Shown piece after piece: positions 5,147 through 64,000 of a DNA stretch of 64,000 bases. Below the pieces are notes generated by a model. That model was not told the DNA's origin, ran no database searches, and was given only the letters and a program-made list of their open reading frames with translations. Where the stretch lies: positions 53,945-117,944 of the forward strand of contig JAKMXF010000301.1 of NCBI GenBank assembly GCA_024704765.1, read 5' to 3'. The DNA comes from Oopsacas minuta. Taxonomy: Eukaryota > Animalia > Porifera. The stretch's first letter is position 1, and every line of letters begins with the position of its first letter. Both the position numbers and the translations under genes were made by a program.

Positions 5147-6447
5147 TATTTGTGATGTAATTAGGAACATAAGTCCTAAGAAAATAGAAGGTTTCATGGC
5201 TTTACAATGGATAAATTTGAAATTATTGGGGAATTGATATACTAGGGCGTTCAATAAGTCTTGCGGGTGATATCATAGAATATGATACAAACACTGTACA
5301 CACTAATTCACTATATTATTTTTCAAAGTAATCTCCTCCTGCAGATACACAAAGTTTTAACCTTTCCAGCCACTTGTGAAACACATTTCTGTACTCTTCT
5401 TCGGGGATGGGTTTGAAGTACTGGTACAGGCCAGTTCCGAGTGCTTGTAATGTGTTAAAATCTTTGCCTTGAAGATAGATTTTACGCCTGGGGAGTAGCC
5501 AAAAATCACACGGAGCTAGGTCTGGTGAGTATGGTGGATGGGGGAGTAATGCTAACCCTTCTACATCCAAGAAATTTTTGGTAAGCTTAGCTGTATGGGA
5601 ACTGGCGTTATCAATTAAAATCTTCATTCCTCGAGTTCCGGATTTCGGGCGGTACTTTTCTATATTTTTATCAAATTTGGAAGCACTTGCTCTGTAAAGA
5701 AAATAACAATAACAGCCTTGCCACTCCCACAAGGTAATTGCAAGACAATTCCATGACTACTGAAGAAGATGGTATACATAATCTTAGGTTTTCTGAAGTC
5801 GGGCCTAGGAATTTTCCCGGTTGTTCGTCGCCCCTCATCCATGCACAGTGTACCGATATGGTGTATTAGGCAAAATTTCAATCGCGAATTTAACTACGTT
5901 TATATGAATCTCCATTGTCCAATTAGTAGGAAAATATTGATGATTGCATGTATGATCCATAGGAATTTAGATTACAGCGAGCTAAAGTAAGCATATTTTA
6001 GATTATTTTAAATAGCTAACCGCAATAGCAAATACCTAACTACCTTAGCAACAATTTTCTTTTAAATATATACTATATAACATTTGTAGTTTATCATCAA
6101 TTTGACGTATTTCTTATATTAGATTAGTTTATGTAATTACTACAAGTATTATTGGTTCCAATTAATTTGGTTGGCTGTCTAGTTTTAAAGGCCTGGAGTG
6201 AAATATTTTAGTCTTAATATAATGTTTGGAGTGTGCATCTATCACGTGACAAAAGAGGACGATAATTTATTGTTAATCGCTTACATTTTTGAAATTATAT
6301 ACCAATTTTCAGACGTGCACCGGATGCACAAATATATTTTTGAGTACATCAATGCTTGGACCGGACAATAATCGGAAAATGCATTTTTAGAATTTTTTGA
6401 TATTCAAGTAAATTCTATATATTCTTGCCCTCATGTAAATTTAGACG

Positions 6448-9400
6448 ATGCACGAAAATAATTTTAATCTTTTCTGTATATTAATAGCTCCTAGTGAATT
6501 AATGGCCCCTGTTGTGACCAACAAAGAAGTGTATGCTAGCAATATCTCAATGAGTAAAAGCCCTAAAGCCACTGCGCAGTATCCTATTGATGATAGTAAT
6601 ATTTCACAGGAAGAACATGATACTATTCTATATAAGTTCAAGTCCCTTATATCATCCAGAGAGTATTACCGGAAGAAGAGTGATCTTGAGACCTGGGAGA
6701 ATTTGACCTTCCATTCATATACTGCACCTCTATCAACTTCCATTCCGAGAAAGAAGAGAATCACACTCGATCCTGGATTAGAACTTTTCTGTAAGGTTTC
6801 TATTTCAGAAAGTCGAAATTTCTCTGAAGAAATTACCCATGATTCCAGAATGCATTTACTTGATTTCAATCTTCAAACTTCTAGATCTAGGCTGAGCATT
6901 CTTTTAGACCAGTGGTTCTCAAACTTTTTCTCATTGCGTACCCCTCAAGCTGGACCTTGTGTGTGATGTACCCCTTAAAATGGTCTGCATTGTAAATATT
7001 AGGTTTACAATCCCTTTTACCCAGCTGTGAAAAATAAAAGTGTTTTGTATTCTAGCAATATAAATAAAGTAGATAATTAATTAGTGGGAAGGATGTGCTT
7101 GCATGTTGTGTATCAGACTATTAATTCGTGGCACAGTTTTTGAATGGGCCAGACTGAGATCAGCTTCCATAGACAACCGCGCTCGAAATTTATTTTAATT
7201 AGTAATAGCGCTGAAAATCCTTGTTCACAAAGGTAAGTACTGGGAAACATCAACAAGGTTTTTACTGCTCTATCTGCCACGTTGGGATATATCAAGCTCA
7301 TTTCGTACCAGAACTTTGTGAGTGCGAGTGTTTCAAATTGATCTCGGGCAACAGATTCATTGACTAATTCAACAAATTCCTCTTGGACTCTGTCTAGTAT
7401 AGAACTTACATCGCATCTAAATGGATTTCGAATCATTTTCATGTCCAGGTCGCTCAAGTCTGGGAAGTAAATTGAAATTCATTTCGCATTGCTGAGAGGT
7501 GAGCCTTTACTAGAGAAGAATACTTGACTTCTCTTTCACATCTCGTTCAAAGAATTCAAGCGATTGGTTTTCAGTGAATATACTCGAGAGAGCATGTTCC
7601 TTCGTGAGAGCCAACGAACTTCAGTATAGGACAGCAAATTCTGATGGTCAATATCTAATTCTTGGCACAATAGGCGGAACACACATGTATTAAGAGCACT
7701 GGACTTGATAAAAATTGACCATGGTGACAACATCATCAAGAACAGGTTTTAGATCGGATGGAAGTGTTTAAGACGCAAGAGCGTATCGGTGTATCGTACA
7801 GTGATTGTGTTTCGAAACGGGATTCACTGTCTTTACCCGAGCTCGAAATCCCGAATGAATTCCAAGCATAGCAGGAGTACCATCTGTTGTGCAAGCAGAA
7901 ACATTCTTCCAGGATAGTCTCATTCTACCAAAGTAATCAGAGACCTGCTGGAAGACATCTTCTCCTTTTGTAGTTGTTTCCAAACAATGGCAAAATAGGA
8001 ACTCTTCCTTGAAGTCCCCGTCTTTGATGCACCGTGCAAATACCAGTAGTTGTGCACAACTAGAAACATCCGTTGACTCATCAAGTTGAATTGAAAATGT
8101 GTTCAACGGGGCTCCCAAATCTCAGCAACAACCTGCTGCTCAACGTCATCTGCCATATCTGTAATTCGGCGTTTGATTGTGTCGTTCGAGAGAGGCAGAG
8201 AGGCGAGTTCTTTTCGGCGCAATCTCCCAAAATGCAGTGCACGATGTCATTACAACTGGGGAGTATATGATTTTCTGCAATCGTATGTGGTTTCTTTTCT
8301 TGAGCGATTCGCAAAGCCACCATGTACGAGGCACGAAGACCTGATTGAGTCTGTTGTCTTAATTATCCTCTGTGATCTATATGGATTCGCTTTACTCCTA
8401 CCTCTTGGTGCTTGAAGAAATCTATATCCTTATCTGCAAGATTTGGGTGGCACCCGCTTAAATGGCGTTTTAGAAAAACTTGGTTTCATCGAGCCCTCAG
8501 ATAGCATCTTATAACATATTACACATTGTGGTAGTTCCCGTCCCTCTTTAAGTATGGATGTAAATCCATATTTGATATAGTCTTCATTATACTTCTGTTT
8601 CTTAGCAGATTCCATATGAATTTGGTGATAAAGTCAAGGTCTCAAAGAAATACTCTTCTAATTTCCATTTTATAAAAACAATACGATACACGGGTGGGTG
8701 TGATATTCAAATCAATATGAGTTGACACATATGTACGGACAATGGAATCCTTAATTAGCATAACTTCAAAAAAATAAATATTCAAGGGTGATAATAATTA
8801 GTGACGAAACCATTGTAACTGATACATATTAATTATTTGGCATGAAATTACTATCTATGTGCTGAGTCTGTTGACATGATAGTGTGTAACTCGAAATATT
8901 TGTATATGATTATTACAGAATTGATATGATTAGGTGAAACACCGGCGTACCCCTAGGAAAAGTGCTGGCGTACCCCAGTTTGAGAACCACTGTTTTAGAC
9001 CATATTCATTTCTTAGCTGAAAGAGAAAATGTTGATCCTAAACACTAGCTGCTCTGGCTTTAGAGTTAACATCTAACAATTATTACGATCGCGATACCTC
9101 ACAAGTGTGTAAGGAGATCATCAACAAGGGCTCTTTTAGTGGAATCTTGCACAAAGCGGCAATCGATAAATCTGCCATTCTGTTAGACTGTTTAGAGATT
9201 GGAGCGAGCAAATATAAAAATTTAAAAAAAATCCTCAAATATCAAGTCAAATTACCATCTTATGAGCTTGTCTACAGATATCGTAGAGAAATAACTTTGA
9301 TTGATGAGATCGAGATAGTCCATGATCCTGAAGGTTTCTCAACTGGAACTTGTATCTCCTATCATTCGATACTAAAGCTTACAGTCGAACGCTTGATTTC

Positions 9401-10641
9401 AATGTTAGTGCCAATTTCTATTTCACAATATCCGCTCACAGTTAAGATATCAGATGGATTAGATGGTTCTGGGTCTCATTGCACCTATAACCAACAAAAT
9501 AATAACCCTGCCTTTAGTGCTAAATCTTTCATCTTATTGGGATTCAAAATATTATCAATAGCAGATACACTTGGAAACGATGTCTTCTACAACCATTCTC
9601 CTAACTCCCCCTTTTGTTTCAGACCGGTTGCGTTGATAGCATTGAAAGAGGATTATAATAATGTTCATTTTATCATGGATAAAATTGTCAATCCCCAAAC
9701 CGACCAAATATTGGTGAACGGATTATCCCTGATAGGAGGACATGTACAAGTTAACAATGTTCGTTCTCTCTTTGACACCACAATGGCTGGACTGTTAGAT
9801 GGTGTTGGAGGTGCTTCTTGTCATCTATGTACTGCATCGGACGAAGAAATTAACAGCATTGACTGGGTTCGTTCTGGATTCCCCATAAACAGGTTAATTA
9901 GCGATGCTGGGCAACTCATTGATGATGTTAATGAAGATGACTTCCTCAAACTCTCATCCAAACAAAGCTGGGTATAACTCACAAACCCACATCTGACATC
10001 AATATAATTGCTGCCCCTTTGCATGCGTACCAATGTGTATTCCGGTGTAGTTTCAGTGTGGATATTCCATCAAGTCAGAGCGGTACATCAACTACTGGGA
10101 ACATTGCACGTGATTGCTCTTTGGATAAGCGAGACTTTTTAAAATGGACGACTTCCTCGATTAATCTATCTGATAAACCCTTATTAGAGAAGATCCAGAC
10201 TAATCTATCTGTGGTGTTACGACTTGTGAACAGCGGTAACTTAATTAATTGTAACAAAATGGAAGAATTGTGTAAAGAAACGTATGAATACATCTTAGTT
10301 CAGTTTCCATGGGGGAATATCACCCCCTCTTTACACAAGCTACTTTCCCATTCTTTCAAGATTATTGGAGATTATAATAATGGCAGGGGATTACAGAATC
10401 TATCAGAGGAATGTTTAGAAGCTTGTAATAAGTTCGTGAGGCGGTATCGGGAAAATCTTGCCAGAAAAACATCATTCTCGACAATGTACGAGATATTCTA
10501 GTTTGCCTTCTGTGTTGTAGTGATCCCCTACTAGTGCAGAATCGTTTTACATCCACCAAAATGAGGAATTCTAGTGCAATTGATCCAAATAGCCTCCAAG
10601 ATATCTTATATAATAGCATAGTGTTGGAGAATGATAATTAA
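6448..10641 (+). pseudogene. RAG1-like/Transib transposase, ~700 aa reconstructed, disrupted by a hAT insertion and at least 3 frameshifts
   Basis: Reading frame joins across the hAT (..SILLD|HIHFLAERE..). Motifs and RAG1 equivalents: KISDGLDGSGSH (D600), SPNSPFCFRPVALI, SLFDTTM (D708), GASCHLC (ZnB Cys pair), PLHAY, GTSTTGNIAR (cf. NGNFAR), ITPSLHKLLSH (ZnB His pair), LSEECLEACNKFVRRYRENLARK (E962), SDP. Frameshifts near 9045, 9970 and 10480. Confidence 0.85.
6910..8992 (-). mobile_element. hAT transposon, Buster/Charlie group (ZBED5/8-like transposase, degenerate)
   Basis: Perfect 16-bp TIR CAGTGGTTCTCAAACT. 8-bp TSD TTTTAGAC (6902-6909 / 8993-9000) with the central TA typical of Busters. 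Minus-strand fragments: BED-like PQCVIC, KKPHTIAENHILP, FSIQLDESTD, TTDGTPAMLG, HCTIHRYALA, EVRWLSR, FPSTYLCEQGFS. Confidence 0.93.
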
Positions 10642-12181
10642 TTAAAGAATATTAGAGATTGAGTTTACATATTTAGTAACAGTTTTTCCATAAGGTATAA
10701 TCCCCTCAAATATGTATCAAAGGGAAAAACTACACCCCTGGTTCATTATTATATAATAGCTAGTTATATATATATGCAATAATCTTTCTAATAGGAAACT
10801 TGACTTTATACCACTAATTCAATAATAGAAATGACAAATAATATTATTGAGCCATGAATGTTAAAATTAATGAAATCGCAGAAATGACGTCATATTCCCA
10901 ATAGTGGTAATACTACGGAAAATTTAAATGAAATTTTTGAAATTTACTGTGCCGATTTACTATAGAGACCGCATAAAACATGCCTCATTATAATGGTTAG
11001 CCTAATATGCCATTATGGCGATTTTGGCACACTGTGCCATGATCGCTTCTTATACTTGCTATATGGTGTTGAATAGTACACCCATGTCTCATCATCAGTA
11101 ATAATCTCTGTTAGGCGTCTAGAATCGCAGTTCTCATAAGTTTCCAAGAGTTTCTTGGCAATATTCAGTCATGCCAACCTTTGATTCTCACTGAGCTTAT
11201 GCGGGACCCATTTCCCACAAATCGATCGGTAGCCAAGCTCAGTAGTCAGAATTGTATGAATAACTCCCGATGAAATCTCCATGCTTTGTTCTAACTGATT
11301 GACAGTAATGCACTTGTCTTCCATGACCATACTTTCAATGAGTGCGATATTCTCTGAAGTGGTGGTGGATATCGGTCTTCCAGATCGAGGCAAATCTGTG
11401 ACATCAGCATCACCAAATCTAAAACGGGCAGCCCATCGCTGTAGAGTAGATCTGGAAGGACAATCCACGCACAATATCTCCTGTAACTCGCTGAATATCT
11501 GTACGGGCTGGATCTTGAGTATTGTGCGAAACTCTATGTAAGCTCGCCATTTGAAGTTGAAATTATCATCCGTTGAAGCCATAAATTCAACAGTGGGTAT
11601 AAATTGACTACACGTAACTATCTCAAAGATCCCTAATTTGTATTGAATAAGCTTGAAACTTTCAGTATATGGAGTTTAACTATATGGGCTTATAATATAT
11701 GAAAGTTAGATATATTACATGACTAATTCCTAAGATATATCATGATCCGCAAGACTTATTGAACGCCCTGATATAACAGAACTTATTAGATACCCTGTAG
11801 CTGTCGATTAAAGTGATATATTTTTGGTTCTCTTATAATATACATCGTTTAAGCATATTAAAATATCGTACAAAATTAATCATTTATGCATATTGAATGA
11901 AGGAGCATATTGAACGATTGGTATTATATTTTTGAAATATCCTTCCGAGTTACAACATAGGTTTAGCAGGTGGTTACATAAAACTTCTTCAAAAGCCTAC
12001 AGCTGTATATACGGCTAATGTAATGCATATATTATTGGAAATAAATATTTAGTTTCCAGTTTTCTATGATAAGTTTCTTTATACAATTGACTTCTAATTA
12101 TCATTGAGAGTCAACTCATATTAGCTCACTAGCAAGTAGGCAGTGTGGTAAATTGATGTATCGAATACAAATAGTTCGATA

Positions 12182-39099: not shown

Positions 39100-40840
39100 A
39101 TTCGATTAATGTAGAAAGTATTTTTCATCGCCAAATGTTCCCAATAATTTCGAACAAGTTTGTTCTAAGATTCTGTACCATCTTCAGAGAAATCCTCCAA
39201 GCAGAATCCAACAATGGACTCTCGAAGTAACTCCTCAGAGTGGGCTGATATTTTGTGTAAAGTTGGTGTGATACTTGCGCAGGAAATGAATCTATAATCA
39301 AAAGAAAGGTATTTTTACACAGATTCCCCATCCGAAATGTTGACTTCGAGCTTAAATTACATACTTTGAGGATTGTAGAAAGTTATGTATGGCTGTTCGT
39401 TAAAGCAGGTCGATTGTCAATTGCAATGGTAGATAATAAAGAATTGAGGTAATCAGTTTCGTCAAAAAGGCCCTTCGAGAAACATTCTCTGTAGAAGTCG
39501 TTCCACTTCTACAGGGAATGTGAGAGGTGAAAACAAAACAATATGAAAATTTTGTGCTGTGTTGGTGTGATGCTGGTTATAGATAGGATGACAACACCTG
39601 TTACAAAATAAATGATAACCTAGACCGTTGTTGTTTTAAGGAAATCATGAACAATGGCTTTCCAGAACGAAAGTGATGATACAAATGAAGATTGAAGACA
39701 AATTTTCTTAGGCATCGAATTTCTGAAGCCCACCACTCATTCATCAATTCAGCTATTGATAGTTTGGATGTTTTCAGATTAACTTGAACAATTTCCACAT
39801 ACGAAGTAACTGACTATCTCACTACTTTTGTACGAATACAGTTACCATAATAAAGTATCAGATACAATATTCATCATAATAAATAACTAGTTGCCAAGCA
39901 ACAGAAAATATAGAATGGAATTCATACATAAAATTATCTTGCGTATTGGAGCTCATTTACATAACTGAATAACTCTTGAAAATTCAAAGCTATGTGATAT
40001 TACATGCATGATTACGGCCTCTTCAAATATAGGAAATAATTGAAGAGGCAACAAAAAATTTCTGGAAATAAAGGATTAAATCTGGAAACTTGGAAATATT
40101 ATCGAAGGGATTAAACATTCATATTGAATGAGCAAATGTGATATTTGGGATATGGAAGAAGAAATAACAAAATAAAAAAATCAACCAGATTGAATTTGTA
40201 GAATATTTTCCAGTAGCGAGTATAAATTTAGTAATGAAAATTCTATCTACCTTGACAAGCCAGGTATGCACTATAGGTATTCAATCACATTATTTTTTGG
40301 ATTGCATAGTAAGTAAGTAAAGGTAAACATATTCGAAAATCAAAAACACAATTCTAGGACTGTGAACTTTTCCCTATACAGTGCCCAAATACTGCTCAAT
40401 CAGCCATTTTTAAGCCCGTTGGTTTGCATAAAATGTACATTAAACAGGCTAAGACTAGCTGGTTTATTGCATCCATTCAAGCTAGCAATTGGCGCGAATA
40501 GGTATCCTCTCAATTAGTTATTTATCTCTTTGAAAATATCTTTGTCGATATTCCAAAGCCTATATTAAAAGTACAACCAATTCACACATTTTCCTCAAAC
40601 AGGGACCTCCCAAATCCTGGCACCTCCCTAATCCGTGCAACATTTTGACAAAGAGATTTCTTCTGTTGTACTTCATGCTTAACAAGTATCTTAGTACACA
40701 TACTCGCAGCAATAATAATGGTATTTGAATACTCTGGGTATTGCCTACCCCAGTACATATATTTTGTAGCGTTCAGAGCAAACATCGAAGAGTGAATATC
40801 ATAATGTTTTGTGCCACATGTCGCAGAAGTAGCACATCAC
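39100..40840 (-). pseudogene. Third RAG1-like/Transib transposase remnant (heavily degenerate)
   Basis: Across frames: SGTTSTENVSRR (39470-39510), ASITPTLHKISAH (39241-39280), LEDFSEDGTES*NKLVRNYWEHLA (39130-39200), colinear with the other two copies. Weaker N-terminal similarity at 40580-40840 (TLRCFALN..SMCTKILVK vs TLAALALE..QVCKEIINK). A CACAGTG at 36723 may be its 3' end; no matching 5' end or TSD found. Confidence 0.65.
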
Positions 40841-55162: not shown

Positions 55163-55867
55163 TATGTCTCTGATAAGCCATCTAACTGCTGGAGTAACTA
55201 AATGGTCACCAACATCTACTAAAGTCCAATACACCAAGAGTTTTATTTGTGGTTTGTTAAAAGAAAAGTTGAATTTGATGATTGATTGTGCTTCTTCACA
55301 AGGTGGAACTTCTACAACAGGAAATGTTGTGAGACGATGCTTAGTGAGGAAAGATGATAGTGAGAGAGACTTCCTATACTGGATTTTGATACTATTACCA
55401 TCAAATTGCAAACAAGTGATCACTGATATCCGCACCTACCTTGGAGCCATCCTGCGGGTATATTATTCTAATAGAAGAATACACACAGACGAACTCTCAT
55501 TAGTATGTCGCGAACTTTATCAGCTGATTTTGACGTAATTTTCTTGGGCTAACATAACCCCTACAATGCACAAACTGTTAGCTCATGCAGCAAGCATTAT
55601 TTCTGATTATAATGATGGTTATGGACTGGAACAGTTATCAGAGGAAGGTCTGGAGTCAACCAATAAGTTACTAAAATATTTTGAGAACGTTTGTCGAGGA
55701 AGTTTTCTTTTGAAGAAAACTTAAAAGATCTTTTCGCTCGAATCGTCTGCCAAAGTGATCCGATTCTTCTACTAAACAGAAAAATGCGGAAAAGTGCCTC
55801 AAGTAACAGCGATATTCTTAGTAAACAAGATCTTACTGTTAATTCCCTCATAATAGAGGATGATTAA
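55163..55867 (+). pseudogene. RAG1-like/Transib transposase C-terminal third
   Basis: QGGTSTTGNVVRRCL, ITPTMHKLLAH, LEQLSEEGLESTNKLL, QSDPILL. Stop at 55536-55538 and a frameshift near 55680. Confidence 0.85.
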
Positions 55868-56626
55868 GTATATTTCTAAAAACAATATTGACATTCCAAT
55901 GACGTCATAACTCGTGATTCCGAAGCCGTATATAAATTCTGATAGTGTGCATCTGTTTTATAGGGTAGATAACCTATACGTCAATAATACTTCATAAATG
56001 CACATCTGTTACATAAATTGCTATTTCCACTAAACTGTCATTTCGTGCCACTGTGGCTTCCTGGCCAAGCAATTCTTTGAGCTTTCTCCTGCATGATCAA
56101 CTGCCCCTGATACTATTTTCGTATTCAGCCCAGCAGCAATCGAATGAATTTCCAACATTATCAACCCTATGCAAGATTACTTTTCTAATTAACCTACCTT
56201 AACCCCCTCAAATGTATCTTAGACAAGTTATTTGTGGATGGTAAGGAATGAACTTTTCAACAACACATACTTGCTTCTGCTTACTTGCCTAAATCGCGAC
56301 AAATGATAACAAGGCTGTGTTTGAAATTATTCTCCTTGGTCCACTCAGCATGAACCCTTGCTACTTCGGGTCACTCCCACTTGCCTGGAAAGATACACAG
56401 CAGACACGACCAGAATATCTCACTTATTATCCTACTGCTTCTTTTTAGCTGTCTGTTTCTACCCTTGTTGTTATGTATGTAGTCACGTTTTGTATAGAAA
56501 TCCATGTGCCTTGTCTCTTTCTAATTATTTAGAGAGTATTTACCTATCTATCACATTCTAATCTCCATCACTGGTTGGTAATCTAATTATACAATTTTGG
56601 ACTGTCCTTGTTGGTAGCAATAATAG

Positions 56627-63194: not shown

Positions 63195-64000
63195 CAGGGC
63201 GTCCAATAAGTCTTGCCGGTCATGATATATCTTAGGAATTAGTAAAGTAATACATCTAACTTTCATATATTATAAGCCCATATAGTTAAACTCCATATAC
63301 TGAAAGTTTATTCAATACAAATTATGAATTTTTGAGATAGTTACGTGTAGTCAATTTATACCACTGTTGAATTTATGGCTTCAACGGATGATAATTTCAA
63401 CTTCAAATGGCGAGCTTACATAGAGTTTCGCACAATACTCAAGATCCAGCCCGTACAGATATTCAGCGAGTTACAGGAGATATTGTGCGTGGATTGTCCT
63501 TCCAGATCTACTGTACAGCGATGGGCTGCCCGTTTTAGATTTGGTGATGCTGATGTCACAGATTTGCCTCGATCTGGAAGACCGATATCCACCACCACTT
63601 CAGAGAATATCGCACTCATTGAAAGTATGGTCATGGAAGACAAGTGCATTACTGTCAATCAGTTAGAACAAAGTATGGAGATTTCATCGGGAGTTATTCA
63701 TACAATTCTGACTACTGAGCTTGGCTACCGATCGATTTGTGGGAAATGGGTCCCGCATAAGCTCAGTGAGAATCAAAGGTTGGCACGACTGAATATTACC
63801 AAGAAACTCTTGGAAACTTATGAGAACTGCGATTCTAGACGCCTAACAGAGATTATTACTGGTGACGAGACATGGGTGTACTATTCAATACCATATAGCA
63901 AGTATAAGAAGCGATCATGGGTGTGGGGCGACGAACAACCGACGAAAATTCCTAGACCCAACTTCAGAAAACCTAAGATTATGTATACTTTCTTCTTCAG
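63195..64000 (+). mobile_element. mariner (DD34D), same family as 5242-11770; runs off the window end
   Basis: TA|CAGGGCGTCCAATAAGTCTTGC TIR. Frame from ATG at about 63376 reads MASTDDNFNFKWRAYIEF...KWVPHKL...ITGDETWVYY with no stop seen up to the window end. Confidence 0.92.

Follow-up and report, generated by a model that had tools for sequence, protein, structure and literature searches.

A decayed single-gene Transib transposon with asymmetric 12/21 termini in the glass sponge Oopsacas minuta

We analysed a 64,000-nt stretch of the glass sponge Oopsacas minuta (assembly GCA_024704765.1, contig JAKMXF010000301.1), referred to here as the window, whose positions are used throughout. At 5844-11036 the window carries a transposon that had been picked out from its letters as a RAG1-like element with unequal ends (the original prediction). 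We consider it very probable that this element, now dead, is a copy of a glass-sponge Transib, a cut-and-paste transposon with one gene, that it sits in a mariner-type transposon and that it belongs to a clade with built-in asymmetric ends. Its boundaries and its target-site duplication (TSD) of 5 bp are proven. The 5' end consists of a CCATG-flanked CACAGTG, 12 nt and the box GTATTAGGC (5839-5871), and the 3' end, read inward, of a CCATG-flanked CACAGTG, 21 nt and the box ATATTAGGC (11041-11000). The heptamer is exact at both ends and identical to that of the V(D)J recombination signal sequences (RSSs). The alignment of the 5' end with the 3' end requires a single 9-nt gap, and the window holds the pattern of heptamer, 12 nt and box a single time, where chance would give 0.04 occurrences. 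The CCATG duplication is a true TSD, because two copies of the host mariner that lack the insertion hold the 5-mer only once: these paralogous empty sites (L002:13347-13402 and window 63890-63946) show a single TCATG or CCATG at the exact junction. In addition, the joint 5838->11037, with five shared bases, was present in contigs of four public runs. These Logan contigs show presence and joints, not copy number, and among the matches listed no contig gave support either to a 9-bp indel at the 5' end or to its absence. The exact heptamers, the TSD and the shared box behind a 12-nt and a 21-nt spacer, as originally described, were thus all borne out.

The predicted borders were right, but the 5193 bp between them include a nested hAT-type transposon of 2083 bp, which accounts for the extra ~2.1 kb relative to the canonical length of the family (3227-3230 bp). 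The hAT element has terminal inverted repeats (TIRs) of the sequence CAGTGGTTCTCAAACT, decayed open reading frames (ORFs) and two weak Pfam matches, to Dimer_Tnp_hAT and DUF4371. Its site is empty in three other Transib copies (L002, L003 and L004), the corresponding contig joint (6901->8993) was found in public runs, and the DNA compared here held no second copy of it. Comparison with the other copies revealed further lesions private to the window copy: a premature TAG, frameshifts near 9055, 9965 and 10487, and an in-frame deletion of 108 bp (36 codons) near 10047, the sequence of which is kept by all of the other copies. The reading frame is therefore broken at six places, by the hAT, the stop, the three frameshifts and the deletion. 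Short introns were considered for the breaks at ~9050 and ~9975-10055 and rejected, since comparison with four other copies shows them to be the stop, frameshifts and the 108-bp deletion, lesions that these copies do not share. The copy in the window is dead, a fossil, and does not encode the ~700-aa protein of the original prediction; an intact relative, P0055, is a protein of 710 aa.

Protein searches returned near-identical and related O. minuta proteins from this same assembly. Four further copies of the family (L001-L004) were 91-97% identical to the window copy, at Kimura two-parameter distances of 0.03-0.09. The five copies, without exception, carry the heptamer, 12 nt and GTATTAGGC at the 5' end and the heptamer, 21 nt and GTATTAGGG at the 3' end, the 5' terminus of the window copy bearing two private substitutions. 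As the same 12/21 layout is shared by five copies, the asymmetry belongs to the transposing family and not to a lesion. CACAGTG is present in eight of the ten other family ends (the two decayed ones read CAGAGTG and CACAATG) and at all of the ends of the related families. The 5-bp TSDs of the other copies are TACTA and CAGTA (both exact) and CCACG/CCACA (a near match); none is visible for L003.

The layout also extends beyond the family. Three related loci have 12/21 ends: L012 (74% protein identity to the window family), an element of 3112 bp with an intact 710-aa ORF (P0055, LOD99_11909) and the TSD TAGAG; L009 (~57% identity); and L010 (~47% identity, TSD TATCA). Eleven further single ends, among them those at L003, L005, L006, L007 (two), L008, L011 and window 56055, agree with the same rule. 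Across the 210 kb scanned, all of the short-spacer ends lay upstream of the gene and all of the long-spacer ends downstream, with zero exceptions. Symmetric ends in other copies had been named beforehand as the observation that would speak against the asymmetry; every other copy was 12/21, as was every related family with recovered ends, and the claimed difference of about one helical turn thus appears as a 9-bp difference across the five copies and the related families. The proteins of L005-L008, L010 and L011 do not cluster with O. minuta proteins, and these loci presumably come from other species. A metagenome scan with a degenerate end pattern, which was too loose, returned 120 loci, all of them chance matches and none with the heptamer-spacer-box architecture.

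Side-by-side alignment of the families resolved the order of elements within the termini. The heptamer and 2 nt come first; a 9-bp unit (SCRAWATGG) follows, in one copy at the 5' end and in two at the 3' end, and then a box of 9-10 bp (GRWAWTAGG). An example of the doubling is GCAAAATGG followed by CCATAATGG at the 3' end, against the single 5' unit GCAATATGG. The majority fraction across families is 0.80 for the 'spacer' and 0.87 for the box. Conservation is high over the 28-nt (5') and 37-nt (3') termini and lower further inside, falling to 0.57 at the 3' end; the drop at the 5' end is smaller (0.71), a figure raised by closely related families. Unlike RSS spacers, this 'spacer' is almost on a par with the box in conservation, and the values 12 and 21 therefore follow from the choice of the box's borders. 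As far as the alignments go, the split between spacer and motif is arbitrary, and the 9-bp difference is the invariant, for which the simplest origin would be that one unit was duplicated in tandem long ago. The box, GTATTAGGC or GGAAATAGG, does not resemble the A-rich RSS nonamer ACAAAAACC, in agreement with what had been noted before, and the 12- and 21-nt spacers are conserved rather than variable. At the junction of the two 9-bp units, the 3' termini of L012 (5439), L009 (8243) and L008 (7771) contain an 8-bp palindrome without mismatch; L012 and L009 share ATGGCCAT, and L008 has TTGGCCAA, with both outer bases changed together. In the other families, including that of the window, this palindrome has one mismatch; the cases are too few to judge against chance.

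Among solved structures, only the transposase of the Helicoverpa zea Transib (HzTransib) was matched by the window pieces (E-values in Table 1) and by the 439-aa ORF of L002 (E 2e-19). A profile built from 30 relatives matched HzTransib at 7e-61, the amphioxus BbRAG1L at 1e-31, mouse RAG1 at ~1e-22 and the nonamer-binding domain (NBD) of RAG1 (3gna) at E 0.0077. The AlphaFold model of P0055, a protein 74% identical to the window family, had a predicted local distance difference test score of 86.8 and gave a Z score of 33.1 to HzTransib (6pqx) and of 32.4 to RAG1. The grouping of the protein with Transib and RAG1 thus held in both the profile and the structure searches. In the alignment with NBD-containing RAG1 chains, residues 107-687 of the model correspond to RAG1 391-1007, whereas the alignment with HzTransib begins at residue 179. 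Residues 105-178 align to RAG1 391-458, the NBD. The sponge proteins thus have an NBD-like head, which in the window copy begins at ~6841 and is split by the hAT. The catalytic D, D and E and the zinc ligands (CxxC and H....H; positions in Table 1) fall in the active-site columns of RAG1 and HzTransib, in line with the claim that they had been kept.

The zinc-binding region distinguishes the sponge proteins from HzTransib. The segment between the CxxC and the next conserved H measures 65 aa in the sponge family versus 27-30 aa in the HzTransib/Manduca clade, and the ~35 aa that follow the CxxC align continuously to RAG1 and BbRAG1L and face a gap in HzTransib. In a tree of 71 full-length relatives (midpoint-drawn, with tips labelled by feature only), the short-segment proteins (27-30 aa; one is a Manduca sexta protein) fall into a single fully supported clade, and all of the other proteins, the sponge clade included, carry segments of 61-128 aa. 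Within a clade of 16 members that has full support, P0055 is the partner of the window family. An exhaustive profile search yielded 6438 relatives, almost none of them named; a profile search of a word-indexed protein collection returned the same sponge-type proteins only, and no Pfam family reached its threshold for any transposase piece or relative. Among the Transib-like proteins, P0275 (1174 aa, with 31 cluster members on ENA/Logan contigs of 4-7 kb) has an N-terminal extension of ~390 aa, a long zinc-domain segment and a zinc-knuckle tail; no Pfam model matches it, and its very long branch makes its placement unsure.

A C-terminal zinc knuckle of the form CxxCGxxGHxxxxC (CCGHC) is present in the sister families P0057, P0060, P0064, P0065, P0067, P0068 and P0078. 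It is absent from the tails of the window family and P0055, in which, judging from the sister families, it was probably lost secondarily. The 12/21 ends are kept in families lacking the knuckle, and the asymmetry is therefore independent of the knuckle tail. The knuckle is the DNA clamp of RAG1L-type tails; it occurs in basal sponge families and has been lost in several derived ones with 12/21 ends.

The intact L012 element holds a single ORF and no RAG2-like gene, in accordance with the proposal of a RAG2-less family. Taken together, the family has the properties of the Transib superfamily: a DDE transposase homologous to the RAG1 core, 5'-CAC termini, a 5-bp TSD and a single gene without a RAG2-like partner. 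It also has two properties of the Subgroup I Transibs defined by Tao et al. (2022), namely asymmetric TIRs and the zinc-domain segment equivalent to RAG1 alpha11-alpha12; the third, a CTT1 tail with the CCGHC knuckle, is lacking in the window family. The convergent kelch RAG2-like gene that characterises RAGL/ProtoRAG elements is missing from the intact 3.1-kb relatives, which have one ORF. The window family matches the published Transib type except for the lost knuckle, and what is new is the host phylum.

The features of the locus are collected in Table 1.

Table 1 Features of the Transib element and of its host mariner in the window
Feature	Position	Strand	Description
Host mariner-type transposon, part 1	5235-5843	-	TIR 5235-5271; DDE_3 ORF 5316-5732
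Left TSD copy, CCATG	5839-5843		Empty mariner sites hold the 5-mer once
Transib element, window copy	5844-11036		5193 bp; direct sequence reading
5' TIR	5844-5871	+	Heptamer CACAGTG 5844-5850; 12-nt 'spacer' 5851-5862 (one 9-bp unit); box GTATTAGGC 5863-5871
Transposase pseudogene, N-terminal piece	6503-6909	+	Frame 1; start of the NBD-like region (DSRMHLL from 6841); cut by the hAT after 6909
hAT left 8-bp TSD, TTTTAGAC	6902-6909		Sequence
Nested hAT-type transposon (not part of the Transib)	6910-8992	-	Inverted repeat; empty sites in other Transib copies; contig joint; interrupts the NBD-like coding region
hAT right 8-bp TSD, TTTTAGAC	8993-9000		Sequence
Transposase frame resumed past the hAT	9001-9048	+	Premature TAG 9046-9048; other copies read through
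Transposase pseudogene, middle piece	9060-9974	+	Shifted frame; dimerisation/pre-RNase H/RNase H; D 9462-9464, D 9774-9776, CxxC 9819-9830; HzTransib 6pqn E 7e-6
Transposase pseudogene, C-terminal piece	10019-10498	+	Shifted again; H....H 10334-10351, catalytic E 10418-10420; minus 108 bp; HzTransib E 8e-12
C-terminal tail	10489-10641	+	In frame only via a window-specific 1-nt deletion near 10487; no CCGHC zinc knuckle
3' TIR, read inward	11000-11036	-	Heptamer 11036-11030; 21-nt 'spacer' 11029-11009 (two 9-bp units); box ATATTAGGC 11008-11000
Right TSD copy, CCATG	11037-11041		Sequence reading and empty sites
Host mariner-type transposon, part 2	11037-11778	-	HTH ORF 11169-11582; TIR 11742-11778

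Other copies of the host mariner family lie at window 63195-64000 (- strand) and at L002:12771-14110; the copies are 91-97% identical. This family is very abundant, with a summed depth in the public contigs that ranges, depending on the run, from ~5 to >100x that of the Transib region. The window also contains a second Transib remnant, from a different family (55164-55697, + strand), which consists of the C-terminal part only (~44% protein identity to the window family) and is followed by a 3' terminus at 56055 with the long 21-nt spacer (CACAGTG...GAAATAGC). A weaker RAG1/Transib-like C-terminal remnant was found at 39114-39490 (- strand; 31-42% identity over ~120 aa). A 12.7-kb stretch of L007 (ENA assembly ERZ25766962) holds three or more Transib elements or remnants, which belong to different families; one of them is reversed, with its long-spacer end at 9514. 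This clustering suggests a dense local accumulation of Transibs, like that in the window.

The Transib inserted into the mariner with a 5-bp duplication, and the hAT insertion and the decay came afterwards. Reasoning from RAG and HzTransib by analogy, we expect that an active member would nick the DNA beside the heptamer, form hairpins on the flanking DNA and be excised, and would then reinsert with a 5-bp stagger. The heptamers would be read by the catalytic core and the two distal boxes, again by analogy, by a dimer of the N-terminal NBD-like domains. Ends of unequal spacing, one short and one long, might then synapse best, which is the least certain step of the scheme. The original prediction stated that the family already pairs ends of different length, a wording drawn purely from the anatomy of the ends. 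An enforced 12/21 preference of the transposase, for which the case is one of analogy, is possible but falls short of probable. The more specific proposal, that the sponge Transib clade enforces 12/21 pairing with a single RAG2-free protein, with the dimer of NBD-like heads reading the distal boxes and the one-/two-unit 9-bp design setting the geometry, is tentative and on the unlikely side.

Several observations weigh against such an interpretation of the element. Of the GRPR motif in the RAG1 NBD only a part survives (SRKH, with SRMH in the window copy). With a distal box unlike the RSS nonamer and a conserved 'spacer', the full 28/37-bp terminus may form a single binding site in which a 9-bp insertion is tolerated. 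The scores for the Pfam RAG1 family (PF12940) stay below its gathering score of 25 bits, at 15.6 for the window piece and 19.5-23.8 for the relatives, and all five of the family copies looked at are damaged. Furthermore, the conservation of 12/21 among kin does not prove a pairing rule, because the two ends of an autonomous element are retained in any case.

The same facts could be accommodated by an asymmetry that is inherited but neutral, in which an ancestral 9-bp tandem duplication in the 3' terminus was tolerated and the heptamer and its adjacent bases are read at each end separately, with no 12/21 rule. The 3' 'spacer' indeed consists of two copies of the single 5' unit and is conserved as much as the box; moreover, Yakovenko et al. 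(PMC8355894), with reference to Carmona et al., state that a 12/23 preference is absent when RAG1 acts without RAG2, and BbRAGL depends on the heptamer-proximal TR2, not on a nonamer (PMC10462144). Neutrality fits less easily with the persistence of the one-/two-unit layout and the distal box down to ~47% protein identity, while conservation drops inside the termini, markedly at the 3' end, and the NBD-like head, which would have no evident role if only the heptamer were read, is kept. We regard neutrality as a serious contender, although somewhat less than an even bet. Conservation within a group of common descent cannot tell a pairing rule apart from an old duplication that is simply tolerated.

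It is very improbable that the element is instead a remnant of a RAG1L-RAG2L transposon (RAGL/ProtoRAG-type) that has lost its RAG2-like gene. The exact RSS heptamer, the NBD-like head, the zinc-domain segment of RAG1 length and the CCGHC knuckle tail of the sister families would suit such an origin, but these RAG1L-like features have all been reported for Subgroup I Transibs (Tao et al. 2022, PMC9435367). Moreover, the profile is much nearer to HzTransib than to BbRAG1L or RAG1, and the single ORF of the intact relatives has ~105 aa ahead of the NBD-like region, so that the RAG1-type N-terminal region is lacking. Finally, a private 9-bp indel in the window copy of an otherwise symmetric family, for which the heavy decay of this copy and the two private substitutions in its 5' terminus might speak, is refuted by the 12/21 ends of all four other copies and of at least three other families, and retains practically no probability.

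Our preferred assignment, a dead Transib copy from a clade with asymmetric ends, places the sponge family beside known elements. Several Transib families have a 5' terminus resembling an RSS12 and a 3' terminus resembling an RSS23, and the 12/23 rule is derivable from them (Kapitonov & Jurka 2005, PMC1131882). Examples are Transib5 of Drosophila melanogaster and Transib2 and TransibN1-N3 of Anopheles gambiae (PMC1131882; reviewed in PMC8355894), and a hypothesis was built on these 12/23-type Transibs by Yakovenko et al. (2021, PMC8355894). Like the sponge family, they have a single gene without RAG2, a CAC heptamer, a 5-bp TSD, and a short-spacer 5' end with a long-spacer 3' end. The sponge elements differ in having 12/21 ends (a difference of 9, not 11), a G-flanked box (GRWAWTAGG) instead of an A-rich one, a conserved 'spacer' of one versus two 9-bp units, and a hexactinellid host.

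Subgroup I Transibs, which include ctenophore and bacterial members and Hydra Transib-9, all have asymmetric TIRs, the alpha11-alpha12 region, a CCGHC-type tail and an NBD equivalent, and the alpha11-alpha12-equivalent segment was lost in Subgroup II (Tao et al. 2022, PMC9435367). Martin et al. (2023, PMC10462144) likewise list a CCGHC tail, an NBD and asymmetric TIRs among the features already identified in Transibs. The sponge family shares with Subgroup I the asymmetric TIRs, the segment and the NBD-equivalent head, and the sister sponge families share the CCGHC (CTT1) tail as well, whereas the window family and P0055 lack the knuckle; the likeness is one of features, not of a joint tree with the reference proteins of Tao et al. 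Since asymmetric Transib ends were published in 2005 (PMC1131882) and 2022 (PMC9435367), their novelty was overrated in the original prediction.

HzTransib (PDB 6pqn and others), the only Transib characterised biochemically and structurally, is the best match in both sequence and structure, with the same DDE and zinc-ligand positions as the sponge family. In contrast to the sponge proteins, HzTransib and its relatives in insects have no ~35-aa segment behind the CxxC and form a separate clade, and the solved chains of HzTransib begin at the dimerisation domain, ahead of which the sponge model has its NBD-like head. The RSSs of RAG1/RAG2 and the ends of RAGL-A/AanRAGL resemble those of the sponge family in their bipartite structure and length asymmetry of about one helical turn, along with a 5-bp TSD and the RAG1-core fold (PMC10462144, PMC9435367); the ends of AanRAGL are 4/13, also a difference of 9 bp (Tao et al. 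2022, PMC9435367), and the heptamer of the vertebrate 12/23 RSSs is identical to that of the sponge ends. Unlike RAG and RAGL, the sponge family lacks a RAG2-like gene, a RAG1 N-terminal region and a nonamer resembling ACAAAAACC, and it consists of multi-copy mobile elements rather than a gene of the host. We found no paper describing Transibs in sponges in the searchable literature, and the accessible parts of Tao et al. (2022, PMC9435367) and its supplements make no mention of sponges.

The locus yields no new principle. What it reveals is that a glass sponge, a non-bilaterian animal, holds a large radiation of Transibs with the exact RSS heptamer, a conserved 9-bp asymmetry, an NBD-like head and a RAG1-type zinc-domain segment, and without RAG2. 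The window copy is a fossil, but its partly intact natural relatives, especially the multi-copy P0055/L012 family, are a useful system for the pairing question. The origin of the V(D)J 12/23 rule is debated between a Transib seed and RAGL-A ancestry (PMC8355894, PMC10462144). If a 12/21 pairing rule were true of the sponge elements, a rule of the 12/23 type would originate before RAG2 and before the diversification of animals.

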